This document shows positions 6,945-49,252 of a stretch of 64,000 bases of DNA, in pieces (the stretch's first letter is position 1; the number at the start of each line of letters is the position of its first letter). The notes beneath the pieces were generated by a model. That model ran no database searches, had not been told where the DNA came from, and saw only the letters and a list, made by a program, of their open reading frames with translations. The DNA is taken from IMG/VR virus record IMGVR_UViG_3300032323_001214, positions 185,607-249,606 of that record, one strand, 5' to 3'. Made by a program: the position numbers and the translations under genes.

Positions 6945-7328
6945 ATGAAGATTAGCGAATTACTAGAATCGTACAGAGATACAACATTACCTTTAGGTAA
7001 GTATAGAGGCCCATACGATCCTAGGACAATGCAACATTATTCTGATGAACATATCGATTCATCCGAGTTAACTGATATTGTCGAAGAACTAATAGACGAC
7101 GGCTACGAGCCAGAAGTTGTGAGAATGGATCCAAAAAATCTCACTGCAACACAAGACTGGTTAAGTGATTATGGTAGTGATGAAGCAATGTTCCCTGAGT
7201 ACACAGACAGACCAGTGGTTCTGAGAGATGGTCAGCATTTCTATATACTAGATGGGCATCATAGAGTAGCATCAGCATTAAAAGCTAACAAACCGGTAAC
7301 TGTCTATCTGTTTAACGAATTAGATTGA
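6945..7328 (+). CDS. ParB/Srx-like domain protein with MKISELLE leader
   Basis: L.ATQ and P.V...G..YILDGHHR motifs. Confidence 0.7.
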   Translation: MKISELLESYRDTTLPLGKYRGPYDPRTMQHYSDEHIDSSELTDIVEELIDDGYEPEVVRMDPKNLTATQDWLSDYGSDEAMFPEYTDRPVVLRDGQHFYILDGHHRVASALKANKPVTVYLFNELD

Positions 7329-7387
7329 ACCTTATAGCTTTTCTTTTTCACACTCCTGTAGTATACTAAGTACTACGGGAGTTTTTT

Positions 7388-8020
7388 ATGATTATAGGAA
7401 TTACGGGACTAATTTCGAGCGGTAAAGATACAATCGCTGATTATCTTTGCACATTTCATGGATTTAAACGATTGAGTTTTGCGGCTAGTCTTAAAGATGC
7501 AGTGTCAAGTGTATTTGGTTGGGATAGAGAATTATTAGAAGGCTCTACTAAAACTAGCAGAGAATGGCGGGAACAAACTGACTCTTGGTGGAGTACACGT
7601 TTGCAAATGGAAATCACACCTAGGCGTGTTCTGCAATACTGGGGTACAGAAGTGTTCAGAAATCACTTTCATACTGATATCTGGGTTGCAAGTGTAGAGA
7701 ACAAACTACGTCAAAGTACCGATAATATTGTCATCACTGATTGTCGTTTTGCCAATGAAGTTAATGCTATTAAACGAGTAGGTGGAATCACTGCAAGAGT
7801 TGAGCGGGGAAATAAACCCGAGTGGTATGATGCGGCAGTTTCGTTTAACAAAGGTGAATTTGGAAATATGACTTGGTCTTTAAGCAAGTCTAAATTAGAT
7901 AAATTGGGTGTTCATGCTAGCGAATACTCAAGTGTGGGCTTGTCCTACGATCATTATATCGACAATAACAAAACTATTGATGACTTACATAAACAAGTTG
8001 AATCAATAATCAACTTGTAA
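7388..8020 (+). CDS. Deoxynucleoside monophosphate kinase (T4 gp1-like)
   Basis: IIGITGLISSGKDT P-loop, SFA..LK, TPR..LQ.WGTE, ITDCRF.NE, H.SE. Confidence 0.9.
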   Translation: MIIGITGLISSGKDTIADYLCTFHGFKRLSFAASLKDAVSSVFGWDRELLEGSTKTSREWREQTDSWWSTRLQMEITPRRVLQYWGTEVFRNHFHTDIWVASVENKLRQSTDNIVITDCRFANEVNAIKRVGGITARVERGNKPEWYDAAVSFNKGEFGNMTWSLSKSKLDKLGVHASEYSSVGLSYDHYIDNNKTIDDLHKQVESIINL

Positions 8021-8350
8021 ATCCCCACGTTTCCAAGTAACTTCTTTCTTTTTAACAACTTCAACACAGTTAAGACATATACTACGTAGGTTAGTCATCT
8101 TACAGTTATCTAGATCACCGTCTATATGATATACTGTAATTTGACTAGACAATGTGCTATGAAATCCACATAAATCACATGTGGATTTTTTTTTGTATCC
8201 CGCAGTTTTCCATCTAGGACTTCTGGGTTTTAGTTTTTTCTTTTTACGACCACATTCATCACACATACTACGATAGTGTGTTACACCTTCACGGATATAA
8301 TTCACTGCACATTGATTTTTTCCACATGTTGAACAGATAGGTCTTGGCAT
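8003..8350 (-). CDS. Small Zn-binding HNH-like protein
   Basis: Multiple CxxC pairs and HIDGDLDNC...NL.SICLNC. Confidence 0.6.
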   Translation of the reverse strand: MPRPICSTCGKNQCAVNYIREGVTHYRSMCDECGRKKKKLKPRSPRWKTAGYKKKSTCDLCGFHSTLSSQITVYHIDGDLDNCKMTNLRSICLNCVEVVKKKEVTWKRGDLQVDY

Positions 8351-8407
8351 CTATTATTTAGTAGGGACCTTCGAAGGTACGCTAAACCAGTCTTTTTTGA
8401 TTTTTTT

Positions 8408-8415
8408 ACTAAATA
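8408..8415 (+). promoter_or_regulatory. Late promoter box variant ACTAAATA
   Basis: Upstream of tail sheath; a divergent copy lies at 8355-8362 on the minus strand. Confidence 0.6.
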
Positions 8416-8471
8416 ATAATATGCATTTTTAGGTGGTAAACCTCATAATTTTACAATAAAGGAAAAATAAA

Positions 8472-12050: not shown

Positions 12051-12051
12051 A

Positions 12052-12075
12052 TTGATACCCCTTCGGGGGTATCAA
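12052..12075 (+). terminator. UUCG-tetraloop hairpin between sheath and tube genes (terminator or stabiliser)
   Basis: TTGATACCCC-TTCG-GGGGTATCAA perfect 10-bp stem; no U-tract. Confidence 0.6.
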
Positions 12076-12081
12076 GCGAAA

Positions 12082-12089: not shown

Positions 12090-12111
12090 AAGATAATAGG
12101 AGAAATATAAA

Positions 12112-12756: not shown

Positions 12757-12767
12757 GTTATTAACTT

Positions 12768-14781: not shown

Positions 14782-14848
14782 ATAAAAGTGTAGTTCGCGG
14801 ACCTGAGAAATCCCAACTACTCTAATGCCGAGGAGGGCACCAGCAATG
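14777..14848 (+). ncRNA. Candidate structured leader RNA, copy A (late box, two stems)
   Basis: GTAGTT/AACTAC stem with CGC/C internal loop and GGA/TCC inner stem, TCTAA linker, TGCC/GGCA hairpin around GAGGAG; homologous to 38711-38780. Confidence 0.6.
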
Positions 14849-15544
14849 ATATTTATCAATAACAAATATACCACGTGGTATAATTCTATAATCAATAAAG
14901 CCAAAGATAGAACAATTAACGGCTACACAGAAAAACATCACATTATACCCAGTTCATTGGGCGGAAGTAATGGCACCGATAATTTGGTAAAATTAACACC
15001 TAGAGAACATTTTGTTTGTCATTTATTATTAACTAAGATGACAACATGTAATGCTAGGTACAAAATGAATTTTGCTCTATATATGTTGGCAAACATTAAA
15101 AACATAGGTGAAGGTAGATATATTCCTAATAGTAGAATGTACGATTTGGCTAGAAGATTATATAAAGAAACATTAGACAATTATTGGACAGATAAAAAAC
15201 GAAAAGAACATGCAGACAAAATAAGACCAACATCTGTGGGTAGAAAACTAAAAGAATCGTCAAAAGAAAAACTTAGGAATAAAGAATGGACAGAAAAAGC
15301 ACTTAAAAATCGCCTCAACAACTGTTTAAAATCAGCAGCAGCCAGAAAAGGTTCTAAATGGTCTGACGACCGCAAGGAACAAAAGTTTGAACAATATATA
15401 GAAAAAAACAAGCATCTATTTCCTCAAGTGTTCTCCTTATCTGACTCAGGTATTAACACACGACAAATATCTATCAAACTACAAATTTCATGGGATAGAG
15501 TAAAATACATTTTGGACAACAGAGACCGAATAAATAACATATGA
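14846..15544 (+). CDS. Free-standing HNH homing endonuclease
   Basis: EKHHIIP.SLGGSN...NLV.LTPREHFVCHLLL motif; basic C-terminal DNA-binding region. Confidence 0.85.
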   Translation: MIFINNKYTTWYNSIINKAKDRTINGYTEKHHIIPSSLGGSNGTDNLVKLTPREHFVCHLLLTKMTTCNARYKMNFALYMLANIKNIGEGRYIPNSRMYDLARRLYKETLDNYWTDKKRKEHADKIRPTSVGRKLKESSKEKLRNKEWTEKALKNRLNNCLKSAAARKGSKWSDDRKEQKFEQYIEKNKHLFPQVFSLSDSGINTRQISIKLQISWDRVKYILDNRDRINNI

Positions 15545-16051: not shown

Positions 16052-16672
16052 ATGAAGAGCCTAAAACAATACATTGCAGAAAGTGTACATACTTACAATT
16101 ACACTATCAAAATTGCTGGTGACGTGGATAAGAACTGGTTGGACATGTTTAAGTATAATCTTAACAAGTTTGATCCTATACGTATCAGTGAGCCTACAAA
16201 AACACCTATTCAAAAAGATCCATATGGATTTCCTAATTTAGCAAATCAGGCTATAACTATCATTAAGGCAGACTTTCGCTATCCAGCTACAGAGCCAATG
16301 ATTCAGCAGATTGCTCAATTACTAGGTTATAATGTAGATATGGTCAGAGTAATCAGTACAAAGTATGATGACAGTATAAACAGCGAAGTCGAAGGCTATG
16401 CTAATCAAATGAAAAATAGTCCAGTTCTTACACATGAAGAAATGGAAGAACAACCAGGAGCTAAAGAAGCTTCTAAAGCATATGGTGATAGTTATTTGAA
16501 TAGTATTAAGGATCAAACTAAAGATAGTAAGATCAATATTCCTTATGAAGCCAAGAAGACTCCGGATGCGTTTGACCCCTTCAAAATCATTCCACAAGAT
16601 CAAGCTGGTGCCAAAAGTCCAATGAGCACTATAATAAGACAGCCTAAGCCTGCAACTGGCGCAAGTAAATAA
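16052..16672 (+). CDS. Putative head internal protein (MKSLKQYIAE leader)
   Basis: N-terminus resembles T4 capsid-targeting sequence MKTYQEFIAE; late box at 16025-16032. Confidence 0.6.
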   Translation: MKSLKQYIAESVHTYNYTIKIAGDVDKNWLDMFKYNLNKFDPIRISEPTKTPIQKDPYGFPNLANQAITIIKADFRYPATEPMIQQIAQLLGYNVDMVRVISTKYDDSINSEVEGYANQMKNSPVLTHEEMEEQPGAKEASKAYGDSYLNSIKDQTKDSKINIPYEAKKTPDAFDPFKIIPQDQAGAKSPMSTIIRQPKPATGASK

Positions 16673-16688: not shown

Positions 16689-19298
16689 ATGGATTTCAAA
16701 AGTTTATTATCACAACTAGACCAGTTGAACGAAGCAGAAAGTACAGTACATAAAGGTACGTATGGTACAAGTTATGGCAAAGAAGATGTTCGTGACCAGT
16801 ATGGTCATAAAATCGGCAAACAAGATAAAGGCGCTGAAACGAAAAAAGATGCACCTAAGAAAGGTCGCGGCCGCCCTAAGAAAGGTGCTGATGATTCCGG
16901 TGAAGTTAAGAGTTATGACTTCAGTGCATTTGGTATTAACAAAGGCAAAGATGTTAAATTACCAGCACATGACAAAAAGAAAACTACTAAACATAGTTTG
17001 AAAGAATATCTTGACCAATTAGAAAGTGCATTGAACGAAGCTGAACAGATTCAAATCAAACCAGCAAGTCAAATGCCTAAAAAGCCTGGTCAAACATCAC
17101 AGCCTGGTCAACAACAAGGTCAGCAAGCACAGAACACACACGTTATTTCCCAGGGTGATAAGACATTAGGTACAGTTAATAACCCACAATTAGCACAACA
17201 GATTAAACAATCTATTGGCAAAGGTGAAATGACTTTGATGCCTGACCAACAAATGAAAGAAGGCGCTGGATACGATGGTTCAGAGCCATTGGATCTCAGC
17301 AAGAATCCATCTGTTAAGGATGTGTTCAAACGTGCTTTGTATATCTATGATTTCGAAGGCTACGGCAACAACATGGACTACAGCGAAGATGATGCTATTG
17401 ACCAGTATGTTGCTAAAAACTTTGGTCTAGATGTACTGGATCAATTGACTAATGCAAGAACTCAAAGTTACTTTGGTAGAGCCGACGGCAAAGGACCCGG
17501 CGGTGGTGGCAGAACTAGCAACCTAGGCACATCCAGTGCTCCAGGTGGTAACTTCCGCACAACTAAGGCTGGTGTAATGAACAAGCAAGATGCTAAGACC
17601 ATGAAAAGTCGTGTAGCTGACAGATTAGGACGTCACCCTGAACCAAATTTACCAGAAGGAGATATCGGTAAACATAACAATGCCACTACAGGTTTTGATG
17701 CATTAGTTAAAAAACTAACACCTAAATATGGTGTTGAAGCCGCAAAGCGTATTGCTGGTGCTCAGTTAAAGAAAATACGTGAAGCAGATATGCCACCTAA
17801 TGATAGTTTAGCTAGTCCGTTGTCTTTAGAAGAGGGCAAGAAGACTATTAAGAAAGATGACAAAGCTGAAAAAGCTGGTAAAAAAGTTACTAAAGACTTA
17901 GAATACGATATGAATCATAAAGGTAAAGATGATGCTAAAGCTGAAAAAGCTGGCAAAAAAGTTACTAAAGACATTGAGTATGATGAGAAGAAAAAAGTCA
18001 AAGAAGATAAAAAGCCTGACGCAAACAAAAATGGTATTCCTGACTATGCTGAAGACGGCAAAGGCAAAAACGATTTGAAGAAAAAGAAAGTTAAAGAAGG
18101 TATGGATCATAGACTAAAGGCAGCCCGCCATATGGGTAAAGCACATGCTCTTACTAAAGAAGGCTATAATTGCCGTTACGATGACATGGAAGAATCAAGA
18201 CAATATCATGAAGGCTACAAAGAAGGTCTAGATGAGTGCTATGGTCAAATGCCAGTACAAGGTTATGTTGGTGAAGCAAATCCTCCAGCAACAGTTCCTG
18301 GCATGGCAAATCAAGCTATGCGTGAGCCTGCTATGGAAGACGATATGTACGAAATGGATAAGACCGCGTACATGAAGCAACAAGCAATGAAGACTCCAGG
18401 TGACACATTTAAGGCATTTGGTCAAACTTTCAAAGATAAAGAAGTATTAGAAAGTCCATTCGCTTTTGAAGCATTAGAGCAACAACTAAATGCATTACTA
18501 GAAAGTAAAGAAGAAGTTGCTGAAGGCATGACTGTTTCTATCAGTAAAGGTCAACAAGGTTCACCTGATTCAGTAACTGTATCAGCACAAGACAGTGAAG
18601 CCGATCAGTTGTTATCAGTAATCAAGCAAGCCGGTTTAGGCTTGTTTGGTGGCGAAGAAACAAATGGTTATGGTGCCACACAAGGTGATGCCCCACAACA
18701 TGGTGGTTTAGATGTTGTTGGTGACCATGACGGTATGATGGCATTGATTAAGAAAGTTACAGGCGGCGAAGCAGGTAACGGCGACTACGCTGACGAAGAA
18801 GGTCATGACGACCATGATCATAATGAGCCATGTGAAACATGCGGTTCTAGTGATTGCGGATGCGATGATAAAGAAATGGTTGGTGAAGTAGAATCAGAAG
18901 ACCAAATGGAATATGAAGTCGCTGAAGAAATCGATCCTAATAACAGCGACGAAGCGAATGAAGTCAACAGTGACGCTGTTCGTGATGCTGCTCTTGCAAC
19001 TGCTGCCAGCACAAACGAAGAAGAAATTCATGAAGACGAGGCTGAAGCTGAAGCAGAAAATGCTGAAGTTGATTTGAATGAGTGGGCTAATGACGCCGGT
19101 AAAAACGGCACAGACACATCATTTGAACAAGATATTGACTTTATGACTAAAGTTATTTCTGGTGGATTGAACAAGCAGAAGTCTACAGGACAATCTACGA
19201 TCCCAGTAGTATCAACTCAATTAAATCGTTTAGGCAATCCTATGCAAGAATCAGTTGATTTGCTTCACGATTGGAAGAAACTAAGCGGTATTAAGTAA
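16689..19298 (+). CDS. Large acidic modular protein, putative prohead core / internal polyprotein
   Basis: Many [ILVM]xE sites (LNE, LKE, VKE, VAE, LEE); duplicated KDD.KAEKAGKKVTKD.EYD; low-complexity linkers. Confidence 0.55.
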   Translation: MDFKSLLSQLDQLNEAESTVHKGTYGTSYGKEDVRDQYGHKIGKQDKGAETKKDAPKKGRGRPKKGADDSGEVKSYDFSAFGINKGKDVKLPAHDKKKTTKHSLKEYLDQLESALNEAEQIQIKPASQMPKKPGQTSQPGQQQGQQAQNTHVISQGDKTLGTVNNPQLAQQIKQSIGKGEMTLMPDQQMKEGAGYDGSEPLDLSKNPSVKDVFKRALYIYDFEGYGNNMDYSEDDAIDQYVAKNFGLDVLDQLTNARTQSYFGRADGKGPGGGGRTSNLGTSSAPGGNFRTTKAGVMNKQDAKTMKSRVADRLGRHPEPNLPEGDIGKHNNATTGFDALVKKLTPKYGVEAAKRIAGAQLKKIREADMPPNDSLASPLSLEEGKKTIKKDDKAEKAGKKVTKDLEYDMNHKGKDDAKAEKAGKKVTKDIEYDEKKKVKEDKKPDANKNGIPDYAEDGKGKNDLKKKKVKEGMDHRLKAARHMGKAHALTKEGYNCRYDDMEESRQYHEGYKEGLDECYGQMPVQGYVGEANPPATVPGMANQAMREPAMEDDMYEMDKTAYMKQQAMKTPGDTFKAFGQTFKDKEVLESPFAFEALEQQLNALLESKEEVAEGMTVSISKGQQGSPDSVTVSAQDSEADQLLSVIKQAGLGLFGGEETNGYGATQGDAPQHGGLDVVGDHDGMMALIKKVTGGEAGNGDYADEEGHDDHDHNEPCETCGSSDCGCDDKEMVGEVESEDQMEYEVAEEIDPNNSDEANEVNSDAVRDAALATAASTNEEEIHEDEAEAEAENAEVDLNEWANDAGKNGTDTSFEQDIDFMTKVISGGLNKQKSTGQSTIPVVSTQLNRLGNPMQESVDLLHDWKKLSGIK

Positions 19299-19340: not shown

Positions 19341-19390
19341 GGCTATCGCCTTTGTAAAAAGAACGATAAATACTAGATAAGGTGATTTTT

Positions 19391-19954
19391 ATGTTTTATG
19401 TATATGCGTATTTGAGAGAAGATGGTAGTCCTTATTACATAGGAAAAGGAAAGAACAATCGTGCTTGGAAAAAAGGGAAGGGAGAAATCTCCCCACCTAA
19501 AGATATTTCTATGATAGTTATCATGGAAACTGGTTTGTCTGAATTGGGCGCACTAGCTATAGAAAGAAGAATGATTAAGTGGTATGGTAGAAAAGATTTA
19601 GGAACAGGAATTCTTCATAATAAGACAGAAGGCGGTGACGGAGTTTCAGGTGCTCGACAAACAAAAGAACATATACAAAAGCGTATAATTTCAAGTAAAG
19701 GAAAACCGATGGGCATGACGGGCAAGAAACATACAGCAGAATCCAATCACAAAAGAAGTGTTGCTATGTTAGGAAAAAATATCGGGCCACAATCAGCAGA
19801 ACACCGCCTTGCTAGTGGGTTAGCTAAAAGGGGAATGAAATATAAACCACAAGAAATTCTACAATGTTCTTATTGTAATAAATTAGGTGGCGCCGCAAAT
19901 ATGAAAAGATATCATATGGAAAATTGTAAATTAATAAAAGAGGAATATGTATGA
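19391..19954 (+). CDS. GIY-YIG homing endonuclease with NUMOD3-like repeats
   Basis: [20 protein letters not shown]..., N.T.GGDG; GKKHT.E motif; late box at 19365-19372. Confidence 0.85.
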
Positions 19955-33720: not shown

Positions 33721-34263
33721 ATGACAAAGATACTTAATGAAGGTTTAGACTATCACGACTTAGAAGGACAAGTTGATCCAACTGTAACTGTGGATGAGTA
33801 TGCCGCGCACATGGGCAAAGATAGTGAAATTGTAACGTTGGCCTTTGTAACTCACAGTGAAGCTGCAGGTAATGATTTGGCTGATTGGTTCGAGCGTGGT
33901 TATGATTATGTACTTGATGCTGAAGTAAGCGACGGTGAAGTTAGCCCGGGAAAATATTTAGTATTTGTAGAAATGAATCGTAGAAGCACTGTACCTGAAA
34001 GAATTATTGAGCTTATTACTGATTTAGAAACGTTAACCGATTTACCACTCAAAGATTGGACAATCACTATTGATGATGAAGAATACGAAACCGATGAATC
34101 TATTCTAAAACAAAAAATCACTATAAGTCCGCACGAATATCGTAAAGACAAAGAAAAAGAAGAAGAATTAAATGAGATGCGAGAAATCGCAGGCTTATCA
34201 ACCAAACCTATTCATCAACAAGATGAGTATATAAGAAAAATAAAATCAATGGCAGGATTATAA
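33721..34263 (+). CDS. Hypothetical protein, possible head-associated (MTKILNEG leader)
   Basis: Acidic; N-terminal LNE; C-terminal I..MAGL. Confidence 0.65.
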   Translation: MTKILNEGLDYHDLEGQVDPTVTVDEYAAHMGKDSEIVTLAFVTHSEAAGNDLADWFERGYDYVLDAEVSDGEVSPGKYLVFVEMNRRSTVPERIIELITDLETLTDLPLKDWTITIDDEEYETDESILKQKITISPHEYRKDKEKEEELNEMREIAGLSTKPIHQQDEYIRKIKSMAGL

Positions 34264-35711: not shown

Positions 35712-35738
35712 TAAATATTTTTTTTACAAGGAAACAGC

Positions 35739-38006
35739 GTGAACAATTCACCCGAAATCGAAAGCATCATTGAAGAAGCCATTATTCAGGCAAAAGAGCG
35801 CAGACACCAGTATGTAACTATAGAGCATCTGTTACTGTCATTAATTACACATACTCCTTTCAAAAAATGTTTGGATGGTTTTGGTGCAGATACTGAAAAT
35901 TTAATTAAAGAAGTTGGTGCTTACCTAGATAGTCTACATGCAATTGTAGACAAAACATCTGAGGAAGTTCAACCAAGAAAAACTAATTCACTTGAGCGCA
36001 CAATGAATCGTAGCGTTACTCAGGTGTTGTTTACTGGGCGTAGACAAGTTACTACTATAGACCTGTATCTAAGTATTTCAAGCGAAGGTAATAGCCACGC
36101 ACATTACTATTTGCTAAAATATGGAATTAACAAATCTGAATTTGTTCAGCATTGGCAAAGACATTATAAGGGTGCAGAATTCACTGCTAAGTTATCTGAT
36201 AGCCAAGCTGACGAAATCCTCGAAGAATATACAACAAACTTAACACAACTTGCACGACAGGGCAAACTAGAACCGTTGATCGGTCGTAGTGTTGAAATTG
36301 ATGACATTGTTAATGTATTGGCTAAACGATTTAAGAGTAACGTATTGATGGTTGGTGATCCGGGCGTTGGTAAAACTGCTATTGCAGAAGGTATCGCACA
36401 AAAGATTGTCAATGCAGATGTACCTGAATTCTTAAATGACCATGAAGTCTATAGTCTTGAAGTAGGTGCTCTACTTGCAGGATCAAAATATCGCGGCGAC
36501 TTTGAAGAAAAAGTAAAACAAGTCATTGATGCATTGAATACCAAGAAGAAAGCTATCCTATTCATTGATGAAGCTCACACTATGCAGGGTGCAGGCTCTA
36601 GTAATACTGGTGGACCTGACTTTGCAAATATGATTAAGCCTGCAATTACTAAAGGTACATTGAAAGTTATCGCAAGTACAACTTGGGAAGAATTCTATGA
36701 GTCTTTTGAAAAGGATCGTGCATTGATGCGTAGATTCTATAAAATCTCTATTGATGAACCATCAAATGAAACTACTCAAAGAATCCTTAAAGGCTTGAGC
36801 ACACGTTTAAATGACTTCCATGACGTTAACATCACTGACGAAGCTATTGCATCTGCTGTAGAAAACGCTGCCCGTTACATTCACGATAGAAAGAATCCTG
36901 ATAAGAGTATTGATTTACTTGATGCAGCTTGTGCAAAGCAACGTGTTGCTGGTAATAAAGGAATAGACATTACTAAAGATTTGATCCATGAACAAGTAGA
37001 AAGATACACTGGTGTACCTGCTGACAAACTCAATGGTGATAATTTTTCTCGCATTAATGACCTTGAGTTGAACATCAAGGGGAAATTATATGGTCAAGAT
37101 GAAACAATTGAACAAGTTCTTGAAAGAGTATATGTAAGTTTTGCTGGGATTGGCAATGATAATAAGCCAACTGCTAGCTTTATCTTCTTGGGCCCAACAG
37201 GTACAGGTAAAACAGAATTGGCTAAGTTGTTGAGTAAGAACCTTGACATGCCATTGCTCAAGTACGACATGTCAGAATACGGTGAAAAGCATTCGGTGTC
37301 TAGCTTGATCGGTCCACCCCCTGGTTATGTTGGCTTCGGAGACAGTCAAGTTGGCGGTGGTAGATTGATTAGCGATTTGAGCAAGAATCCTCACAGTATC
37401 TTGTTGTTTGACGAAGTTGAAAAAGCACACCCTGATATCTTTAACATCTTCTTGCAAATGCTTGATGAAGGTCGCATTACAGGATCTAACGGAAAAGAAG
37501 TTAACTGTAAAAATACTATCATTATTATGACTAGTAATTTAGGTTCCAGTGATAGCGAAAGAAACAATATTGGTTTTGGTAATCAAGAAAAAACAGGTGA
37601 AGATGATAAAGCAATTAAAGAATTCTTCAAACCTGAATTCAGAAACCGTGTTGATTTAATTTGTAAATTCAAGAAACTTGATTTGTTGGCTATTAAAAAG
37701 ATTGTAGTCAAGTTCACTGAGGAACTTAAGAAAACACTGATGGACAAACATAATATTAGTTTGAACCTTACTGAGCCGGTAATAGAATACCTAGCTGAGA
37801 ATGGTTATGATAATAAAATGGGAGCACGTCCACTTGCTCGTAAAATTGATGAAATGATTCGAGTTCCTATCTCAAAGAAGATTCTTTTCGAACGCATAAA
37901 AAATGCAACTATCAATGTTACATTAGTAGACGATAAAATCGAGTTTAATTCGGTGCAAAAGCAAACAGCGAGAGTAGGCGAAGATGGGATTATTGAAATC
38001 AGTTGA
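35739..38006 (+). CDS. clpA: ClpA-like Clp ATPase (two AAA+ domains)
   Basis: GDPGVGKT, FIDEAH, GPTGTGKTE, DMSEY, PPGYVG, FDEVEKAH, IGF ClpP-docking loop, MGARP. Confidence 0.9.
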   Translation: MNNSPEIESIIEEAIIQAKERRHQYVTIEHLLLSLITHTPFKKCLDGFGADTENLIKEVGAYLDSLHAIVDKTSEEVQPRKTNSLERTMNRSVTQVLFTGRRQVTTIDLYLSISSEGNSHAHYYLLKYGINKSEFVQHWQRHYKGAEFTAKLSDSQADEILEEYTTNLTQLARQGKLEPLIGRSVEIDDIVNVLAKRFKSNVLMVGDPGVGKTAIAEGIAQKIVNADVPEFLNDHEVYSLEVGALLAGSKYRGDFEEKVKQVIDALNTKKKAILFIDEAHTMQGAGSSNTGGPDFANMIKPAITKGTLKVIASTTWEEFYESFEKDRALMRRFYKISIDEPSNETTQRILKGLSTRLNDFHDVNITDEAIASAVENAARYIHDRKNPDKSIDLLDAACAKQRVAGNKGIDITKDLIHEQVERYTGVPADKLNGDNFSRINDLELNIKGKLYGQDETIEQVLERVYVSFAGIGNDNKPTASFIFLGPTGTGKTELAKLLSKNLDMPLLKYDMSEYGEKHSVSSLIGPPPGYVGFGDSQVGGGRLISDLSKNPHSILLFDEVEKAHPDIFNIFLQMLDEGRITGSNGKEVNCKNTIIIMTSNLGSSDSERNNIGFGNQEKTGEDDKAIKEFFKPEFRNRVDLICKFKKLDLLAIKKIVVKFTEELKKTLMDKHNISLNLTEPVIEYLAENGYDNKMGARPLARKIDEMIRVPISKKILFERIKNATINVTLVDDKIEFNSVQKQTARVGEDGIIEIS

Positions 38007-39901: not shown

Positions 39902-40423
39902 ATGAGTCCGGATCTTTTTAGAAAATATATAGATATTATAAATGAAAATGCAGTAGACATTACTCAAATTGCTAGTCAGTTAAAATTCTTACCAACAAAA
40001 AAGCAACCAAAGCAATATAAATTTGTTAAAGATGGGGTTCCTGGTAAAATGCCAGCAATGACTTATACTGTTTCAGCACAAGAACAACCTGTAGTTACTA
40101 TTACTAGTGATGGTAAAGAAACACAGAACGTTGCGGCTACAAACGATATTATTATGTCAGGGCCTAGTAGAGAAAATTATGTAGTTAAGGGTGCTAAATT
40201 TCCTAAACTATATGATGGTAATATGGGTGGTGTAGTCATTCCGGAACAAAGTCCTCGACTGGTAGCATTGTATACGGGTCAACAACCTATTACGTTTACT
40301 GCTCCTTGGGGAGAAAGTATGATAATGAAGCCAGGTGATTATTTAGTTAAAGACGGGGATGCTGGTTATTATCGTGTAGCAAAAGCTGAATACGAACAAA
40401 CCTACAATCCTCCGGGAAAATAA
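39902..40423 (+). CDS. PGDYG-like protein with IINE leader
   Basis: T..G.E, APWGE.M..KPGDYLV, F/Y..TY motifs. Confidence 0.6.
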   Translation: MSPDLFRKYIDIINENAVDITQIASQLKFLPTKKQPKQYKFVKDGVPGKMPAMTYTVSAQEQPVVTITSDGKETQNVAATNDIIMSGPSRENYVVKGAKFPKLYDGNMGGVVIPEQSPRLVALYTGQQPITFTAPWGESMIMKPGDYLVKDGDAGYYRVAKAEYEQTYNPPGK

Positions 40424-42679: not shown

Positions 42680-42696
42680 GTATTGATAAATACTTA

Positions 42697-44427
42697 ATGA
42701 ACCTAAAAGAGCTAAATTCCTTCAAAATATCCGACGCCGTCACTTTCCATGACAAACTCAACCACAAGTTGTGGAATGGTACTAAGTTACGCCCAGAAGT
42801 CAAACAACAACTAGAAGCAATTGCAGATGATTTTCTGCAAGAGATGGGAATCCATGAGTTAGATGTGAGAGATATTACTATTTCAGGAAGTAATGCTGCA
42901 TATAGTTATACCGATCATAGTGATTTGGATTTGCATATATTAGTGAATGTAAATGATTTGCCTAGTAGTGATGTATATAAAGAATTGTTTCAAGCAAAAA
43001 AGACAATATATAATGATACACACAACATAACCATACGCAAAGTTCCGGTTGAATTATATGTACAAGACGCAAGTGAACCAGTTGTAAGTTTGGGGGAGTA
43101 CAGCATAAAAAATGATAGCTGGATTAAGATTCCTACAAAGCGTAGAAGCAACTTTGATCAAAATGCCACCAAAGCAAAATATAATAAGTTATTAGATATT
43201 GTTGAACGAGCAATAGAATCAAACAATTTAAACAAAATTCAAAAAGTATTAAAGAAGATTAAACAATATCGTCAAGCTGGTTTAGATAAAGGTGGCGAAT
43301 TTGGTCCTGAGAATCTAGCATATAAAGCACTACGTAGTCAGGGCTATATTACTAAACTGTACGATTTGCGTGATAAACTACACAGCAATCGTTTAAGCAT
43401 TGAAGGTATGTATTCTAATATGGATGAAGATTATGATCCCAATGGTCCTCCTCCTGGCCCTGAGTTCAAGCCTACAATGCCAGCTGGTACTGTCAAAGTA
43501 GATGTAAGTGATGTATATGACTGGTACAAGTTAGGTCAACATATTAGTAATATGAAAGGTCTAGGCAAACACGATTTTGGTAGTGGACCCCCTAGTACTA
43601 TATTGTCATTTGGTGACGAAGATACTGAACACAAATATATTGACGCATTACAGAAAACGGGCTTAACAACTACTGATATTGATCCAGTCGATCCTAAACA
43701 ACCTAAAGGTATGAAGCGCCAGAAAGTTGACCCTACATACAATGTTAACGAAACATTTAATAAACCTTATTCAATAACATGGGAAAAAAGTGAGTACGGC
43801 GATTACGATGCTCTGGCCACACTAGAAGATGGCACACACCTAAGCATAATGTTTGAGCACACTACTCCCTACGAAGTTGCTGTTTCTTTTTGGAGAAACA
43901 ACAGTCAAGAAGTCACAGGCGAAGGTGATGCACAACGAGTATTTGCTACAGTATTGTCTGCTATTCAACAGTTTTTAAAACAAGAGCAGCCGGCAAATAT
44001 AACTTTCTCAGCAGTGAAAGCAGATGATCCATCGGGCAGCAGATCCAAGCTTTACGACAAACTAGTTCAGCGTTATGCTAGCGCATGGGGATATCAGTCT
44101 CGCAGTTTTGACCATGATGACAAAGTAGAATTTGAATTATCTAAAATAAACAAGAATGTAAAAGAAGATGAAACAATGCAATATGCGGCTGAAAAAACAC
44201 CGCCAACAAATACATACGGTGGTTTAAGAGATAACCAATATCGAGGCAGTATCTCAGAAGCCTCAGGATACATTCCTAGCGAAAAAGAGAAAAATGACCC
44301 GCGTTTTAAGACGGCATTAACAGTAGATGTTAAGCCAGATAGTATAAAAAAGAACGCAAAAGCTTTTAGCTGGCTCACAGATAGAGCGGGCATTCCACCA
44401 ACATTAAAAGCTAGCGGCAAATTCTGA
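42697..44427 (+). CDS. Pol-beta-superfamily nucleotidyltransferase fused to several small modules
   Basis: ISGSNA.Y.Y...SDLDLH (GS..DxD) and VELYVQD; downstream modules bounded by MDE, VNE, VKE, ISE. Confidence 0.75.
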   Translation: MNLKELNSFKISDAVTFHDKLNHKLWNGTKLRPEVKQQLEAIADDFLQEMGIHELDVRDITISGSNAAYSYTDHSDLDLHILVNVNDLPSSDVYKELFQAKKTIYNDTHNITIRKVPVELYVQDASEPVVSLGEYSIKNDSWIKIPTKRRSNFDQNATKAKYNKLLDIVERAIESNNLNKIQKVLKKIKQYRQAGLDKGGEFGPENLAYKALRSQGYITKLYDLRDKLHSNRLSIEGMYSNMDEDYDPNGPPPGPEFKPTMPAGTVKVDVSDVYDWYKLGQHISNMKGLGKHDFGSGPPSTILSFGDEDTEHKYIDALQKTGLTTTDIDPVDPKQPKGMKRQKVDPTYNVNETFNKPYSITWEKSEYGDYDALATLEDGTHLSIMFEHTTPYEVAVSFWRNNSQEVTGEGDAQRVFATVLSAIQQFLKQEQPANITFSAVKADDPSGSRSKLYDKLVQRYASAWGYQSRSFDHDDKVEFELSKINKNVKEDETMQYAAEKTPPTNTYGGLRDNQYRGSISEASGYIPSEKEKNDPRFKTALTVDVKPDSIKKNAKAFSWLTDRAGIPPTLKASGKF

Positions 44428-44470
44428 TTGAGTAGTATTTTGATAAATACTATATCAAACGGAATTCATT

Positions 44471-45754
44471 ATGAAAATCACACAAATCATCAGCGAAACT
44501 ACTGCGGGCTGTGTTGCTACAGTAGCAATGCCAATGGGCGAAACACAAAAGCGTCCTAAAGTTTCAGGACTAGAGCCAGCGGACAAAGTAATGTTCGGTA
44601 AGTCAAAGAAAAAAGGACCCTATGGAAACAGCCTTAGCGAGGGCAAAATGAAAGACTTGTCTATGGATTTACGAGCAAGCAAAGATGGTTTATCTGATAT
44701 CGACTTTAAAAAGAAGTATGGAAAGACCAAAGAAGAAATGCGTAAATTAATGCAAGATGCACGTAAAGAACAAAAAGTTAATGAAGATGAACTAAGCGAA
44801 CAGGATCTAATACTAGTTCCCGGTCAAGGTCGTAAAATGAAAACTGGTTTCGTGCCACATGGTAAAAGTCGTCTTGACCATGAAGTTGAGATGGCTCGTA
44901 GTGATTTATTCAGTGCCGCACAAAATGCTCAAAAAGTCTATTCGATGATTAAACACACAAGTGAGGAAGAGGGTCTTGAAGGCTGGGTACAAGAAAAGAT
45001 TATCAAAGCCAATGATTACTTAAACACTATCCGTGAATACTTAGAAGGTAAGCAAGTGCAAGGTATGGCGGAAGACATGACACGCAGAGGATTCTTGCGC
45101 GGTCTCGGAGCCGCAGCAGCAGGGGCAGCTGGTATTGGTGCTGCCGGTAATGCTCAAGGTAAAGTGACCTTTGATAAAGACGGTAATCCAATAAAACCAC
45201 CAGACTGGAAGAACTTTCAGGGTTCAGCACCGGCTCAGGGTGCAAAGCCACTACCTGCAGATAATACTGCATCATCAACTGGTTCTGCTTCAGCCTCTTC
45301 TCAGACAGCTAGCGCAGGAAGCTCTCCTAGTTCTGCATCAAGAGCAGCCGCTAATCAAGCCAGTGCCGCGGCAGAAAAGATTAGATATACCAATCCTAAA
45401 TTTAATCAAGAATACGAGCGAATTGAAAAATTCTATCAACAAACTAAATCAAGCATATTGAATAACAAAAGATACAGTCCTAACCCTGATATTGCTAAAC
45501 GACAACACGCTGAATTTGTGAAAATGTTGATAGCAGCAGATACTGAATTTGCTCAAAAGACCAATGAGTTGATGAAAGAATACAGCCGCCTAAAAGAACA
45601 CGGCGTGGCGGAAGGTGCCAAAGTAGATAGAATGATTAAGCACATTACTAAATCTGAAAAGAAATTAGGCAAGAGTAAAGATGAAGCTGAGAACATAGCC
45701 TGGGCGACTGCTAATAAACGTGGCATGTTAGACAACAAGAACAAGAAAGCGTGA
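44471..45754 (+). CDS. Modular putative head polyprotein (MKITQIISE leader)
   Basis: Late box 44442-44449; modules separated by LSE, VNE, GMAE, GVAE. Confidence 0.7.
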   Translation: MKITQIISETTAGCVATVAMPMGETQKRPKVSGLEPADKVMFGKSKKKGPYGNSLSEGKMKDLSMDLRASKDGLSDIDFKKKYGKTKEEMRKLMQDARKEQKVNEDELSEQDLILVPGQGRKMKTGFVPHGKSRLDHEVEMARSDLFSAAQNAQKVYSMIKHTSEEEGLEGWVQEKIIKANDYLNTIREYLEGKQVQGMAEDMTRRGFLRGLGAAAAGAAGIGAAGNAQGKVTFDKDGNPIKPPDWKNFQGSAPAQGAKPLPADNTASSTGSASASSQTASAGSSPSSASRAAANQASAAAEKIRYTNPKFNQEYERIEKFYQQTKSSILNNKRYSPNPDIAKRQHAEFVKMLIAADTEFAQKTNELMKEYSRLKEHGVAEGAKVDRMIKHITKSEKKLGKSKDEAENIAWATANKRGMLDNKNKKA

Positions 45755-47443
45755 TATGAGCAATATTCTAAAAGGTTTAAATGAAAGGTATTTTAGTCGT
45801 GATGATCAAGACCAACAGAATGCCATGGATACACGCCGTAGAAGCGATTTGAGTGGCGAACGAAATGCTGGTCTTAATGAACCAGATGAATTACCTACTA
45901 TACCTCAACAAAGTCGCAATGGCGTTTATGAATACGATGTACCTACTGGTCAAGAAAAAATAGCACAAGAATTAGGATTACAACTGCATAAAGGTCATTG
46001 GTTCTCTCGTGTCCCGGTTCAAAAAGCAAATTTTCAATTTGGTCGTCCTCAATTTCATGAGATTCCAGCAAAAAATGTATATGAAGCAGAACAGGATTAC
46101 GGTCCTGAGTATCAAGATAAAGTAAAGCGTCTAGGTCAGATGGCTAAACAAGGTGAGCGTAAAACTGTTTGGGATCCTGTCAAGCGTGTGTACAAGACTG
46201 TTCCAGTAAATCCAGCTAAACAGCAAGGTGTGGCGGAAGAACAATTAGATGAAAAGTGCTGGGACACTCACAAGCAAGTTGGAATGAAAAACAAGGGCGG
46301 CAGAATGGTGCCTAACTGTGTTCCAAAAGAAAGCGTTGGGGAAGAGCAAGATATTACTGAAGAAAAATGTCCACACTGCGGTGGACCAATGTTCAGTGAA
46401 ATGATTATGAACGAGAAGAAAGATGCTTGCTACTACAAAGTTAAGAGCCGTTATAAAGTATGGCCAAGTGCTTATGCCAGTGGTGCATTAGTTAAGTGTC
46501 GTAAGAGTGGAGCAGACAGTTGGGGCGATGGTGGCAAGAAGAATGAAAGTTCTATACTAGAAGGTATTGAACAAGTAGATGAGAACTTACACAAGTGGTT
46601 CAAAGAGAAGTGGGTTCGTTTTGGTCCCGATGGTAAGATTCGTGGTGACTGTGCTAGAGGTGATGATAGTGAAGGTAAGCCAAAGTGTTTGCCACAAAGT
46701 AAAGCACACAGTCTAGGTAAGAAGGGTCGTGCAAGTGCTGCCTCACGTAAGCGCAGAGAAGATCCTAATCCAGAACGCCACGGTAAAGCAATCAATGTTA
46801 ACACTAAGAAAAAGTCAAATGAAGGTGTGGCGGAAGGCTCTACTTTTCCTGGCTCACTGAGTGGTCGTGAATGGTCAAAAGTTGGTAGACAAATAAAGTC
46901 ATCTCAGGGTCGTGATAGCAGTGTTACAAGTCCACATCAACGAAAAGATTGGTACAATCCAAAAGATCCAAGAAGTAGCAAACAGCAAAAATTGGACTAT
47001 TTAAAATCTATGAAGGCAAAGCAAGGTGTGGCGGAAGACCAACTTGATGAGATTAGTTCTACCACTGCAAAAAATGTATACAACAAGAGAGAACAAGAAC
47101 ACAAAGACCTAATGAACAAGACTTATGGCAATGCTCAAGATCCACAAGTTCGACAAGCTCAACAAAAACTTGCAAAAGCCGCAAAGTCCTATTTCAATCG
47201 TGGTGCCAAAAAAGGCGTAGAGGAAAGTTATGATTTGGACGCCTTCTCCGGGGTCAAGTTTCTTAATCCAGAGACAGGTAAAATGGGATCATTCTACTAT
47301 TGGTCTTCAATGGAAGGTAAGAACGAGGCGTACTCTATGATTACTAATAAAAAATTGGTGCCGGCCCACAATGACGGGACACCAATGACTTGGGATGAAT
47401 ACAAACAGGCTCTAGATGGTGGTAATCAAAGTGTGGCGGAAGA
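45059..47443 (+). repeat. Dispersed in-frame junction repeat, consensus CAAGGTGTGGCGGAAG
   Basis: [GA]TGGCGGAAG at 45065, 45605, 46230, 46827, 47028, 47433; degenerate copies near 41076, 41202, 41400, 46329, 47211. Confidence 0.85.
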
Positions 47444-47576
47444 ACAACTAGACGAAAAGTGGTCAACGAAATATAAAGACAGTATCAACTGTAGTAATCC
47501 TAAAGGATTTAGCCAAAAAGCACATTGTGCTGGTAAACAGAAAAATGAAAGTGCTGTTATGAAAGGTCTTAAATAA
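45756..47576 (+). CDS. Modular putative head polyprotein (MSNILKGLNE leader)
   Basis: About ten short modules (CW...PNCV, CPHCGG, KKDACY...WPSAYASG, LHKWFKEKW, KWS.KYK.SINC) separated by VAE/LDE/VDE. Confidence 0.7.
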   Translation: MSNILKGLNERYFSRDDQDQQNAMDTRRRSDLSGERNAGLNEPDELPTIPQQSRNGVYEYDVPTGQEKIAQELGLQLHKGHWFSRVPVQKANFQFGRPQFHEIPAKNVYEAEQDYGPEYQDKVKRLGQMAKQGERKTVWDPVKRVYKTVPVNPAKQQGVAEEQLDEKCWDTHKQVGMKNKGGRMVPNCVPKESVGEEQDITEEKCPHCGGPMFSEMIMNEKKDACYYKVKSRYKVWPSAYASGALVKCRKSGADSWGDGGKKNESSILEGIEQVDENLHKWFKEKWVRFGPDGKIRGDCARGDDSEGKPKCLPQSKAHSLGKKGRASAASRKRREDPNPERHGKAINVNTKKKSNEGVAEGSTFPGSLSGREWSKVGRQIKSSQGRDSSVTSPHQRKDWYNPKDPRSSKQQKLDYLKSMKAKQGVAEDQLDEISSTTAKNVYNKREQEHKDLMNKTYGNAQDPQVRQAQQKLAKAAKSYFNRGAKKGVEESYDLDAFSGVKFLNPETGKMGSFYYWSSMEGKNEAYSMITNKKLVPAHNDGTPMTWDEYKQALDGGNQSVAEEQLDEKWSTKYKDSINCSNPKGFSQKAHCAGKQKNESAVMKGLK

Positions 47577-47619
47577 TGAGAGACTATGATTTTTATTGGA
47601 ACTTAAAAGGATACCCCAG

Positions 47620-48066
47620 ATGATATTAGCAGACGCATTGAAAACATTACTAGCTACTAGTTATGCATTCGTAATTAAAACTCAAAACTTTCATTGGAAT
47701 GTTGAAGGGCCAGACTTCCCTCAGTACCATGAATTCTTAGGTAATTTATACGAAGAAGTATATGGTAATGCTATTGACCAAACAGCAGAATTGATTCGTC
47801 AATTAGATAGTTATACACCCGGATCTATTAGTAGATTTGCAGAGTTAAGCCAGATACCAGATCAGATTAAAATTCCACGTGCTGAACTAATGATGGCAGA
47901 ATTGTATGATGATAATCAAAAGATTTTACAAATGTGGAAAGAATCATTTCATATAGCAGAACAAGCTGATGAACAAGGTATAGCTGATTTTATAGCAAGC
48001 CGCATTGACGCACATGGCAAACATGGATGGATGTTGCGTAGTATTTTGAAGAAAGCTCGGGCATAA
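47620..48066 (+). CDS. dps: Dps / ferritin-like DNA protection protein
   Basis: NFHWNVEGPDF..YHEF...LYEE....D..AE.IR; H.KH.WML. Confidence 0.9.
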   Translation: MILADALKTLLATSYAFVIKTQNFHWNVEGPDFPQYHEFLGNLYEEVYGNAIDQTAELIRQLDSYTPGSISRFAELSQIPDQIKIPRAELMMAELYDDNQKILQMWKESFHIAEQADEQGIADFIASRIDAHGKHGWMLRSILKKARA

Positions 48067-48082
48067 ATTTAGAGCAAACCGA

Positions 48083-48190
48083 ACCCACCTTAGGGCCGGT
48101 GTCGCTATCGGTTAGAGCGCAAGCTCAGGCGTCAAAGGGGAGGCTGCTGCCCCATATATGAGTTACGCCAGACTCTATATAAAGTGAGCA
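48083..48190 (+). ncRNA. Candidate orphan structured RNA (multi-stem, pseudoknot)
   Basis: GC-rich intergenic island with four hairpins, a GNRA loop and complementarity between single-stranded segments and loops. Confidence 0.5.
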
Positions 48191-48206
48191 TTTATTTTAG
48201 AACATT

Positions 48207-48641
48207 ATGAAAAAAATTATAACAACAATTATGTTAGCACTCGCAACTACTGCATATGCACAAAAGGCTCCTCAGGGTGTAACATATGACGCAAATATAT
48301 TGAGAGTTAGTGATGGTGACACAATTGTAATCGCAGCTCCATTCTTACCACAACCTTTGAAACCAGAACTAGCTATTCGTATATACGGGGTTGATACTCC
48401 TGAAAAAGGATTTAGAGCAAAATGTCCTGCTGAAGATGCTAAAGGACAAGCTGCAAGTAAATTCACAAAAGATGCAGTAGCAGCCGCACAAAAACGCCAA
48501 GTAATACTATATGCATGGGATAAGTTTGGTGGGCGAGTATTAGGTGATATATTATTAAATGGACAAAGCCTTCGCACTATGTTGATTCAAAATGGATTTG
48601 CACGTGAATATTTTGGTGATGCAAAACAAAGTTGGTGCTAA
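48207..48641 (+). CDS. Thermonuclease (SNase-like) with signal peptide
   Basis: V.DGDT, IRIYGVDTPE, DKFGGRVLG, L..G.AR; N-terminal signal ending AYA. Confidence 0.9.
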   Translation: MKKIITTIMLALATTAYAQKAPQGVTYDANILRVSDGDTIVIAAPFLPQPLKPELAIRIYGVDTPEKGFRAKCPAEDAKGQAASKFTKDAVAAAQKRQVILYAWDKFGGRVLGDILLNGQSLRTMLIQNGFAREYFGDAKQSWC

Positions 48642-48676
48642 AAGATAAATATAGTATAAAAGCAACTTTTAATTAA

Positions 48677-49252
48677 ATGAGATTTAACGAAATACTATCA
48701 GAATCAGCAGTAAAACAACTAGCAAAAAAATTGCCTAGTTTAGAAAAACACGACTATAATACCATTGATAAACTAATGAAAACAGTAGCTAAACAACATA
48801 GTATCACTGGTAAAGCACTGCATGACCTTTTTGTTAAAAAATATAATAAAACTCCCGACGACTGGATTAAAAATAAATTAGATGAGAGCAACGTTGATAC
48901 AGAATTACAACAGGAAGTTGATAAATTCTGTAAATGGGCATGTAACAAACTATCTATTAAAGACGAACCCCATATTGAGTTGAGTATGGATACTGAAGAA
49001 GCGCAAACTAATCATCATACCGGCGGACACATAATGGGTGATGATAAGATTTGGGTGTATGCTAAAAATCGTAATTTAGTAGATATATTACGCACAGTAT
49101 TTCACGAATTGGTTCATGTTCGTCAGGGCGAACTAGATATGATTAATCCGGGTGATAGTTATCCGGGCAGTCCAATTGAGGTGATGGCTGACGCCTTGGC
49201 TGGTAAATATATCAAAATTTATGGTGAAAAGAACCATCATATCTTTCAATAA
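48677..49252 (+). CDS. Zincin-like metallopeptidase domain protein (MRFNEILSE leader)
   Basis: RTVFHELVHVRQ (HExxH) plus downstream E..A; late box 48644-48651. Confidence 0.7.
   Translation: MRFNEILSESAVKQLAKKLPSLEKHDYNTIDKLMKTVAKQHSITGKALHDLFVKKYNKTPDDWIKNKLDESNVDTELQQEVDKFCKWACNKLSIKDEPHIELSMDTEEAQTNHHTGGHIMGDDKIWVYAKNRNLVDILRTVFHELVHVRQGELDMINPGDSYPGSPIEVMADALAGKYIKIYGEKNHHIFQ

Follow-up and report, generated by a model that had tools for sequence, protein, structure and literature searches.

A T4-like N-terminal leader on predicted late, modular proteins of a PA5oct/Rak2-related jumbo phage

Do late genes of a jumbo phage carry a short N-terminal tag that directs their products into the phage head? 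The question is raised by the terminal 64 kb (bases 185,607–249,606; hereafter the window) of a 249.6-kb IMG/VR virus contig with an estimated completeness of 67% (IMGVR_UViG_3300032323_001214), in which an earlier note had listed nine genes as a family with capsid-targeting leaders of the T4 type and with enzymes as cargo. For T4, the capsid-targeting sequence (CTS), the processing by the prohead protease gp21 and the propeptides of 7–65 residues have been described (PMC3012670, PMC9026906). All nine N-terminal peptides quoted for the window are exact at their coordinates. A discrete nine-residue leader is real and some of the listed genes carry it, but the list is mixed and holds canonical members, variants and unsupported entries. 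Overall, the data indicate that the clade of this phage probably uses a short N-terminal propeptide, canonically of nine residues, to direct proteins to the prohead core, as the T4 CTS does. Genes are named below by the window position of their first nucleotide.

Definition of the leader

The leader was analyzed in the source genome (257 genes), in a main comparison set of 39 related IMG/VR loci retrieved with the 42697 protein (602 distinct genes), and in a complete 352-kb relative (G001; 444 genes), the capsid protein of which is 96% identical. As first defined, a short leader ending in [LI]xE, the motif was present within the first 16 residues of 45 of the 257 genes, compared to 12.3% of internal 16-residue windows. 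With an enrichment so near the background, the bare [LI]xE was dropped as a criterion, and a core derived from T4 and a position-specific scoring matrix (PSSM) were used instead. The strict core, [EQ][FILYVM][ILV]xE ending at residue 7–13, was set a priori from the T4 CTS. It was found in 5 of the 257 N-termini of the source genome (0.88 expected, p 0.002) and in 31 of the 602 genes of the related loci (2.9 expected, p 6e-22), with K or R at position 2 in all cases. The canonical leader in the clade is M-[RK]-[AI]-x-E-[FIL]-[ILV]-x-E, with the Glu at residue 9 in 34 of 36 sequences. Positions 1–3 are conserved although they lie outside the search pattern, and the information content after the leader Glu is at background from P1' onward. 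The codons of the leader are synonymously variable and the DNA of both flanks is unconserved, which argues that selection acts on the peptide. An origin of the leader at the DNA level, as a recombination or translation element, was rejected on the same grounds.

The PSSM scores in G001 were bimodal: about 10 of the 444 genes scored 8.8 bits or more and the next one 4.3, and seven of these high scorers are clustered in the region syntenic with window 42–49 kb. A degenerate DNA pattern of the leader matched at least 120 stretches in IMG/VR. Among the matches listed, 98 are located in 80 IMG/VR loci; 96 of the 98 start an open reading frame (ORF) of at least 60 residues, 89 of these 96 have no upstream in-frame ATG, and the 92 complete leader proteins fall into 22 unrelated cargo families. 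The drop in conservation after Glu9, the 22 families and their mixed Pfam/PHROG content show a tag that is common to proteins otherwise unrelated. The two best leaders of the source genome, MRAKEFITE and MRANEFVSE, are located outside the window, 37 kb upstream.

Recognition of T4 head proteins by the clade leader

As a positive control, 152 T4 ORFs (50–150 kb of NC_000866) were scored with a PSSM for which the uncultivated clade alone had served as training set. The five highest scores were obtained for gp24 (MAKINELLRE), IPIII and IPII (both MKTYQEFIAE), gp2 (MAIFQIINE) and Alt (MELITELFDE), and the scaffold protein gp22 and the protease gp21 were in the top ten; IPI, which has a 19-residue propeptide, was missed. 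gp24, IPII, IPIII, Alt, gp22 and gp21 belong to the head or its core and are processed by gp21 (PMC9026906; T4 record). By this ranking, the leader resembles the experimentally defined CTS and gp21 substrates of T4. Gene 2 of T4 (L151:26061–26885), which ranked 4 of 152, between the internal proteins (IPs) and Alt, is annotated in NC_000866 as the DNA-end protector of injected DNA.

The T4 CTS and the clade leader share an identical P5–P1 core, E-F-I-x-E, and the clade PSSM scores the T4 CTS at 9.0 bits. As in T4 IPI, IPII and IPIII, a short propeptide ending in [LI]xE is borne by otherwise unrelated, basic proteins that here, too, are probably late, and T4, like the source genome, has a gp21-family protease and a gp22/gp23-type prohead. 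Unlike the T4 CTS, the leader described here has nine and not ten residues, with [RK]-[AI] at positions 2–3, and there is at least one further leader class (MSNILKGL..E). The lineage also differs, being that of a ~350-kb PA5oct/Rak2-related jumbo phage, and the cargo is much larger than the T4 IPs and modular (up to more than 1000 residues), with enzymes and polyprotein junctions. T4 Alt, a packaged ADP-ribosyltransferase, is a head-borne enzyme behind a short cleaved N-terminal peptide, which is what is proposed here; the window, unlike T4, has a zincin and a putative ParB/Srx protein in place of the ADP-ribosyltransferase.

The head module of the source phage

The source phage can be assigned to the ~350-kb class of jumbo phages related to PA5oct and Rak2. 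Its major capsid protein shares 63–66% identity with its counterparts in Pseudomonas phage PA5oct, Vibrio phage 2.275.O and 121Q/Rak2-type coliphages; when 6 kb of the window were compared with a phage collection by megablast, no DNA-level similarity to phage records was found. Pfam profiles revealed a T4-type head module on the same contig, upstream of the window:

Minus strand, in this order: portal; 77-residue protein; 270-residue acidic scaffold-like protein; S77 protease; homing-endonuclease-like ORF; 369-residue protein; Gp23-family capsid protein

The portal matches Portal_T4 (PF07230) with an E-value of 7e-104, the prohead protease of the gp21 family matches Peptidase_S77 (E 5.7e-28), and the capsid protein matches Gp23 (PF07068; E 6e-98). 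A gp21-family protease, a scaffold and a gp23-type capsid protein are thus contained in one module of the same contig, and with the S77 protease present the T4 paradigm is applicable in principle. The Gp23 profile starts at residue 54 of the capsid protein, and four [LI]xE sites (LLE7, LLE19, ILE34 and LSE43) precede this start. The 369-residue protein, encoded between the protease and capsid genes, has the highest [LI]xE density of the genome (5.4 per 100 residues vs a median of 0.99), and its PA5oct orthologue is the only gene of that head module without detection in virions by mass spectrometry (MS). This is the pattern expected of a scaffold that is diced and then expelled.

Junctions between modules

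Modules that stand alone behind the leader in one phage are embedded in longer proteins elsewhere, and the three residues before the embedded module were scored. [LIVM]xE was found directly before the module in 19 of 31 distinct internal contexts, compared to 3 of 263 for leaderless genes with an N-terminus that maps within another protein (p 5e-19). The module of MRAREFITE|NFADG, for instance, is preceded by VDE|, LNE|, VAE|, IEE| or VGE| in six different proteins, and that of M..EF.TE|DWQKV recurs as LDE| and LSE|DWQKV in longer proteins. A further module (g131403, MRIKELTE...) is 75% identical to residues 165–271 of a 527-residue protein, where QGVAED-type linkers are present on both sides. 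The junction test indicates that the leader Glu and the internal junctions are boundaries of one kind, as would be expected of cleavage by a common [LIV]xE-specific protease.

A linker (Q)GVAE[GED], often followed by QLDE, is found between modules in the window (46227–46253, 46824–46835, 47025–47051 and 47430–47456) and at residue 378 of 44471. G[VI]AE occurs 22 times in the related loci (6 expected), solely in proteins of the hypervariable region, and one gene terminates exactly in ...QGVAEGR. Two basic C-terminal tail modules of ~55 residues (ASGYIPSEKxKNDPRF... and NFADG[KR]NP...) recur at the end of many proteins of this region, with [LIV]xE directly before each, and might be a second, C-terminal element for packaging or DNA binding.

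Listed genes of the window

The nine genes of the window that had been proposed to carry the leader are the following.

6945..7328, + strand: 127-residue putative ParB/Srx-fold protein; eight-residue leader variant MKISELLE
16052..16672, + strand: 206-residue orthologue of a conserved virion protein; ten-residue T4-like N-terminus MKSLKQYIAE
16689..19298, + strand: 869-residue protein (MDFKSLLSQLDQLNE); L-[NS]-E at residues 13–15 conserved among orthologues; no fit to the leader model
33721..34263, + strand: 180-residue protein, MTKILNE...; conserved [IL][NK]E[GS]L 5–9 residues from the Met
39902..40423, + strand: 173-residue PGDYG-like protein (MSPDLFRKYIDIINE); PGDYG match below threshold
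42697..44427, + strand: 576-residue protein; N-terminal pol-beta-type nucleotidyltransferase and C-terminal modules; no canonical leader
44471..45754, + strand: 427-residue protein; canonical leader MKITQIISE (nucleotides 44471–44497)
45756..47576, + strand: 606-residue basic modular protein; putative second leader type MSNILKGLNE (nucleotides 45756–45785)
48677..49252, + strand: 191-residue protein; canonical leader MRFNEILSE (nucleotides 48677–48703); helical N-domain and C-terminal mini-zincin

The fit to the nine-residue PSSM is strong only for 44471 and 48677, which can be classed as canonical members, and marginal for 6945 and 16052. The leaders of 44471 and 48677, nine residues ending in [L/I]-x-E, conform to the T4-type propeptide (~10–19 residues) but for one residue in length. 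The score of 44471 was 17.0 bits (p~0 vs internal 8-mers); its orthologues keep M[KR]I.QII.E, and the segment TTAGCVATVA after the leader is conserved. The score of 48677 was 12.8 bits.

It is plausible that 6945, 16052, 45756 and 33721 carry leader variants, and 16052 and 33721 are probable members. For 6945 the PSSM score was 5.1 bits (p~0.003), and the same eight-residue variant is found in the portal-adjacent 77-residue core protein (MKLFEMFE) and in g131403 (MRIKELTE). For 16052 the score was just 2.8 bits. Each of the 42 distinct N-termini listed for its orthologues (from 80 blastp hits) keeps [YF]-I-x-E at residues 7–10, while P2 varies, and the protein is a conserved orthologue without a conservation cliff after the leader. 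Its PA5oct orthologue, EST35_0202, was detected by MS in virions. A relationship of 16052 to T4 gp2 was considered and rejected, as no similarity was found. The 33721 protein matches phrog_13138, 'virion structural protein', with an E-value of 5.6e-21. In 45756, [GS]VAE-(E/D)QLDE junctions between modules are located at residues 158–166, 357–360, 424–432 and 559–567. Homologues of this protein have a common MSNILKG[LI] and a nearby [LI]xE, followed by unrelated sequence, so that MSNILKG[LI]..[LI]xE looks like a second leader class.

As leader-bearing genes, 42697, 39902 and 16689 are unsupported, and on balance we regard their N-terminal [LI]xE as coincidence or as part of a folded domain. The background of [LI]xE is 12% per 16 residues, and the PSSM scores of all three are at or below the null. 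The case of 42697 is unsupported because MNLKE belongs to the enzyme domain, as its conserved start: MxLKEL lies within the domain conserved in 15 homologues and is conserved as the first helix of the nucleotidyltransferase family. For 39902 no homologue was found in the related loci or in G001, and its N-terminus is outside the 40 best-scoring ones. The 16689 protein had no match in Pfam, PHROG or NCBIfam and is encoded in a tail-proximal block, between a gp4-like head-closure gene and tail-fibre-like genes. In 42697, a junction-type ISE at residue 521 is followed by the ~55-residue basic tail module ASGYIPSEK... (window 44257–44427). Against the reading as coincidence or domain part, all three genes are located in late operons beside canonical members. 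In addition, residues 406–470 of 42697 resemble the PA5oct virion protein EST35_0349, and this protein is fused to the zincin in relatives; it may therefore still be packaged by another route.

Late-type promoter boxes and virion-protein data

The boxes of the earlier note were confirmed. The window contains 14 GATAAATA boxes, of which 12 are on the coding strand, compared to 5.2 ± 2.2 in shuffled sequences (no shuffle reached 14). Genome-wide, these boxes are mostly located 17–28 nucleotides upstream of the starts of structural genes.

44442..44449, + strand: GATAAATA late-promoter-like box; more at 6114, 12082, 16025, 33099, 39315, 42685 and 48644

The genes 16052, 42697, 44471 and 48677 have their own GATAAATA, at a distance of 20 nucleotides for 16052, 22 for 44471 and 26 for 48677, and the others are downstream within the same operons. 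The genes 44471 and 45756 belong to one late operon, in which the second starts 2 nucleotides past the stop codon of the first, and 6945 is directly behind a neck-protein gene in a GATAAATA operon. By a crude classifier, all 14 canonical-leader genes of the source genome and G001 are in late-box operons and none is behind a sigma70-like promoter (p 0.016). The GATAAATA of 42697 (window 42685–42699) ends just 5 nucleotides before the ATG; if this box has no other function, transcription at T4-like spacing would begin on the start codon or right next to it and yield a leaderless mRNA.

PA5oct was used as a proxy for virion content, since its deposited annotation marks 93 virion proteins as detected by MS. 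Just two PA5oct genes have a PSSM score of 5 or more, EST35_0150 (between the portal and scaffold genes) and EST35_0238, and both products were MS-detected. When the virion proteins of PA5oct were tested with regular expressions, the outcome was of borderline significance (p 0.07, 0.012 and 0.11).

Cargo enzymes

The cargo has a net charge of +2.5 per 100 residues, compared to −1.1 for other proteins (p 1.6e-6); T4 internal proteins are also basic. The Pfam domains found behind canonical leaders in the clade include GH19 (muramidases), ADP-ribosyltransferase, ParB_N, Amidoligase_2 and DUF6934, and there are many unknowns. The ADP-ribosyltransferase is a protein with an ADPrib_exo_Tox domain (9.5e-13) in IMG/VR, and the ParB_N cargo is likewise encoded elsewhere in IMG/VR. 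The three enzymes that had been proposed as cargo in the window fared differently: the zincin (48677) has a canonical leader, the ParB/Srx protein (6945) is plausible with its eight-residue variant, and the nucleotidyltransferase (42697) is without an N-terminal tag.

The 48677 protein is predicted to be a zincin metallopeptidase from its HExxH motif, a third ligand and a zincin fold. HELVH is located at residues 143–147 (nucleotides 49103–49117), and neither the HExxH nor the Glu of GSPxE varies among 10 homologues. The AlphaFold2 (AF2) model has a predicted local distance difference test (pLDDT) score of 81.5; the folds ranked nearest to it by Foldseek are minigluzincins, Wss1, SPRTN and IrrE, with weak E-values of 0.04–1, and a profile search of the PDB yielded no significant sequence match. 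For 6945, DGHHR is located at residues 103–107 (nucleotides 7251–7265), ParBc_2 and DUF1015 matched below their cut-offs, and an Atlas model (predicted TM-score 0.63) compared with a ParB/Sulfiredoxin cluster gave a TM-score of 0.64.

The 42697 protein is predicted to belong to the pol-beta superfamily of nucleotidyltransferases by the pattern G[SG]-x9-13-D-x-[DE] and a downstream acidic residue. GS-x10-DLD is located at residues 64–78 (nucleotides 42886–42930), and the stretches SGSNAAYSYTxHSDLDLH and VELYVQD show little or no variation among 15 homologues. Weak profile matches were obtained to an MTPAP-like family and, below significance, to PDB 2rff, a putative nucleotidyltransferase (E 0.044). 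Stand-alone homologues in cyanophages and Lak phages have no structural annotation. In relatives, nucleotidyltransferase-headed proteins of 1462–1603 residues also contain the zincin domain of 48677, with an amidoligase, and one nucleotidyltransferase-headed protein has a cytidine-deaminase domain. The relatives L033, L038 and L051 have one large multi-enzyme protein that includes the zincin; in the window, the domains are on separate genes. Polyvalent proteins of phages and conjugative elements, as far as they are outlined in PMC7824862 with reference to Iyer et al. 2017, are likewise large multi-enzyme arrays with a zincin-like metallopeptidase, for which entry into the host along with the DNA is predicted. 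In the arrays described here, unlike those outlined there, splits and fusions occur at [LIVM]xE junctions, and there is a link to a T4-type CTS and a prohead protease.

Outside the window, a small leader-bearing module, VLYHATYRPLL...EYHG (g131403–131762; L003:904–1263), gave weak leads to Tpt1/PARP-type ADP-ribosyltransferases (Tpt1 E 0.0035; PARP-bearing Atlas cluster 0.92); the pLDDT of its AF2 model was just 40, and the ADP-ribosyltransferase-like reading is only a lead. N-termini related to this module (VVYHGT, VVFHYTG) are found behind canonical leaders in relatives.

Interpretation of the leader

If the leader functions as the T4 CTS does, late-expressed tagged proteins would be incorporated into the scaffolding core, and the gp21-family (S77) prohead protease would cut past the terminal Glu with a specificity for [L/I/V]-x-E. 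The freed, mostly basic cargo would stay in the head with the DNA and would enter the host at infection, where it may act as an effector or in anti-defence. The same protease motif would separate the modules of longer multi-domain cargo, which could thus be delivered as single tagged modules or as diced polyproteins.

Several points weigh against this reading. The support from PA5oct is thin (2 of 93 MS-positive genes with a PSSM score of 5 or more vs 0 of 355; p 0.04), and a rank test of the PSSM scores over all genes, MS-positive versus MS-negative, was not significant. EST35_0202, the orthologue of 16052, is without the Glu, and EST35_0296, the orthologue of 33721, was not MS-detected in PA5oct virions, though its neighbour EST35_0295 was. 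By PSSM, 16689, 33721, 39902, 42697 and 45756 do not fit the canonical nine-residue leader. The classifier of late and early promoters is crude, and this S77 protease is assumed to cut with the same specificity as that of T4.

The leader could also be a prohead-protease propeptide of proteins that are assembly or structural parts, which are degraded, expelled or kept in the capsid rather than injected. The T4 proteins gp67, gp68 and gp24 are core, scaffold or decoration proteins, and gp24, gp22 and gp21 score with the leader PSSM, too. The position of EST35_0150 next to the scaffold gene of PA5oct points in the same direction, as does the conserved orthologue of 16052 in 80 loci, and the largest leader family (51 of 92 among the matches listed) is a conserved ~130-residue protein without an enzyme domain. 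Some of the tagged proteins may thus be assembly parts. We nevertheless consider this explanation unlikely for the cargo as a whole, which is modular and hypervariable and in part consists of enzymes (zincin, GH19, ADP-ribosyltransferase, ParB, amidoligase, deaminase); it is basic and shuffled between phages, which is the pattern of injected proteins of the T4 IP and Alt type. It is highly unlikely that the motif is unrelated to the head and represents a translation or mRNA element, a recombination hotspot, a tag for Clp/DnaJ chaperones, or a secretion or membrane signal. A DnaJ and a ClpA-like ATPase are indeed encoded in the window (34923 and 35739), and modules are shuffled at these boundaries, where conserved CTS-coding DNA could aid recombination. 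The synonymous variation of the codons and the unconserved flanks argue against a DNA or mRNA element, and [LIVM]xE at internal junctions would make no sense for an element linked to the start codon. The leader is charged and too short for a membrane or Sec signal, and the motif fits the cleavage logic of gp21 and recognizes the targeted proteins of T4.

Read as a head-targeting propeptide, the leader can be compared with the inner-body and ejection proteins of phiKZ and SPN3US, which are also jumbo phages that pack many head proteins and in which a gp21-related protease trims after Glu at redundant sites (PMC9026906). The sites in these phages are S/A/G-x-E and the propeptides are long, whereas in the source lineage the capsid protein is of the gp23 type and the sites are [LIV]xE. 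To our knowledge, no short shared tag is known in phiKZ or SPN3US. No paper on tags of the CTS type, whether in phages like PA5oct and Rak2 or in uncultivated jumbo phages related to them, was found in a literature search that did not cover all journals.

Conservation of the tag seems to extend from T4 to a jumbo-phage lineage that is only distantly related, where it is found on a large repertoire of shuffled modules and enzymes. If it works as in T4, a nine-residue motif would predict, by sequence alone, which proteins of uncultivated jumbo phages are carried in the head and delivered with the DNA; such a pool is where anti-restriction and host-takeover factors like T4 IPI* and Alt were found. 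The protease motif at the polyprotein joints would be a simple rule for the building and processing of this repertoire, and the leader would be a ready-made packaging tag for the engineering of PA5oct-type phages.

Internal Tat-like signals

The 44471 protein contains an internal signal, RRGFLRGLGAAAAGAAG, that resembles those of the twin-arginine translocation (Tat) pathway (residues ~200–233, nucleotides 45068–45169), with MAE just before it. The score for TAT_signal was 18.6 bits in Pfam (cut-off 22.7), and that for TIGR01409 was 16.2 (cut-off 16.7). The motif and the h-region are present, but the signal is internal (residue 205) and would become N-terminal only after cleavage at the preceding MAE. 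In total, seven proteins of the clade have an internal Tat-type signal, consisting of RRGFLxGxG(A)n, a Gly/Ala-rich uncharged stretch and an AxA-like site, with hidden Markov model scores slightly under the curated cut-offs. The other six carriers are the following.

L013:16728–17978
L040:14809–16386
L014:12169–15006
L032:11455–13914
L033:6095–9028
G001 198995–199861

In all seven, an [LIVM]xE ends 2–4 residues before the Arg pair; the sites are VLE-dls, VLE-dlt, VDE-admn, INE-adpa, LSE-id, LEE-mn and MAE-dmt. Two of the seven have a GH19 domain after the signal, and a third carrier belongs to the same GH19 family. One could imagine that an N-terminal Tat signal on the cargo is exposed when the prohead protease cuts and that, after injection, the Tat system of the host exports the fragment to the periplasm. 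We regard this as rather doubtful; if true, effectors would follow a two-step route from the capsid to the cytoplasm and on to the periplasm, and such re-export of injected proteins by Tat is a testable idea. The GH19 proteins with a leader and a Tat-like signal are unlikely to serve as endolysin, given that the window contains a separate, leaderless gene for a GH19 endolysin (22933–23556), which has an orthologue in G001. This gene (phrog_181, 4e-76) is located between ORFs of ~800–1000 residues, taken as tail-fibre genes from their size and position alone; the relatives have extra GH19 paralogues with a leader and a Tat-like signal.

Other features of the locus

Between the neck and sheath genes, window 7388–8020 encodes a P-loop protein resembling deoxynucleoside monophosphate kinases (phrog_139, 5e-48); the orthologue in PA5oct, EST35_0194, carries the annotation of a structural protein detected by MS. 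Homing-endonuclease-like ORFs are present within structural operons at window 14825–15544 and 19382–19954, both GIY-YIG-like by N-terminal sequence alone, and in the genome at g56343–56969, between the prohead protease and scaffold genes, where the NUMOD3 match is below threshold.

Genes of a 7-deazaguanine pathway (queuosine/archaeosine type) at window 49279–49875, 58257–58943 and 61627–62154 suggest modified DNA. The first is QueC-like by an N-terminal motif and matches a PA5oct gene annotated as tRNA(Ile)-lysidine synthetase, the second matches a PA5oct gene annotated as GTP cyclohydrolase type 1, and the third, which is outside the gene set compared with PA5oct, is QueD-like by N-terminal sequence alone. 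The genes for the DnaJ-like and ClpA-like chaperones (window 34923–38006) are located behind a sigma70-like promoter, between two late blocks; PA5oct encodes, in addition to such chaperones, ClpX, ClpS, ClpP and FtsH.

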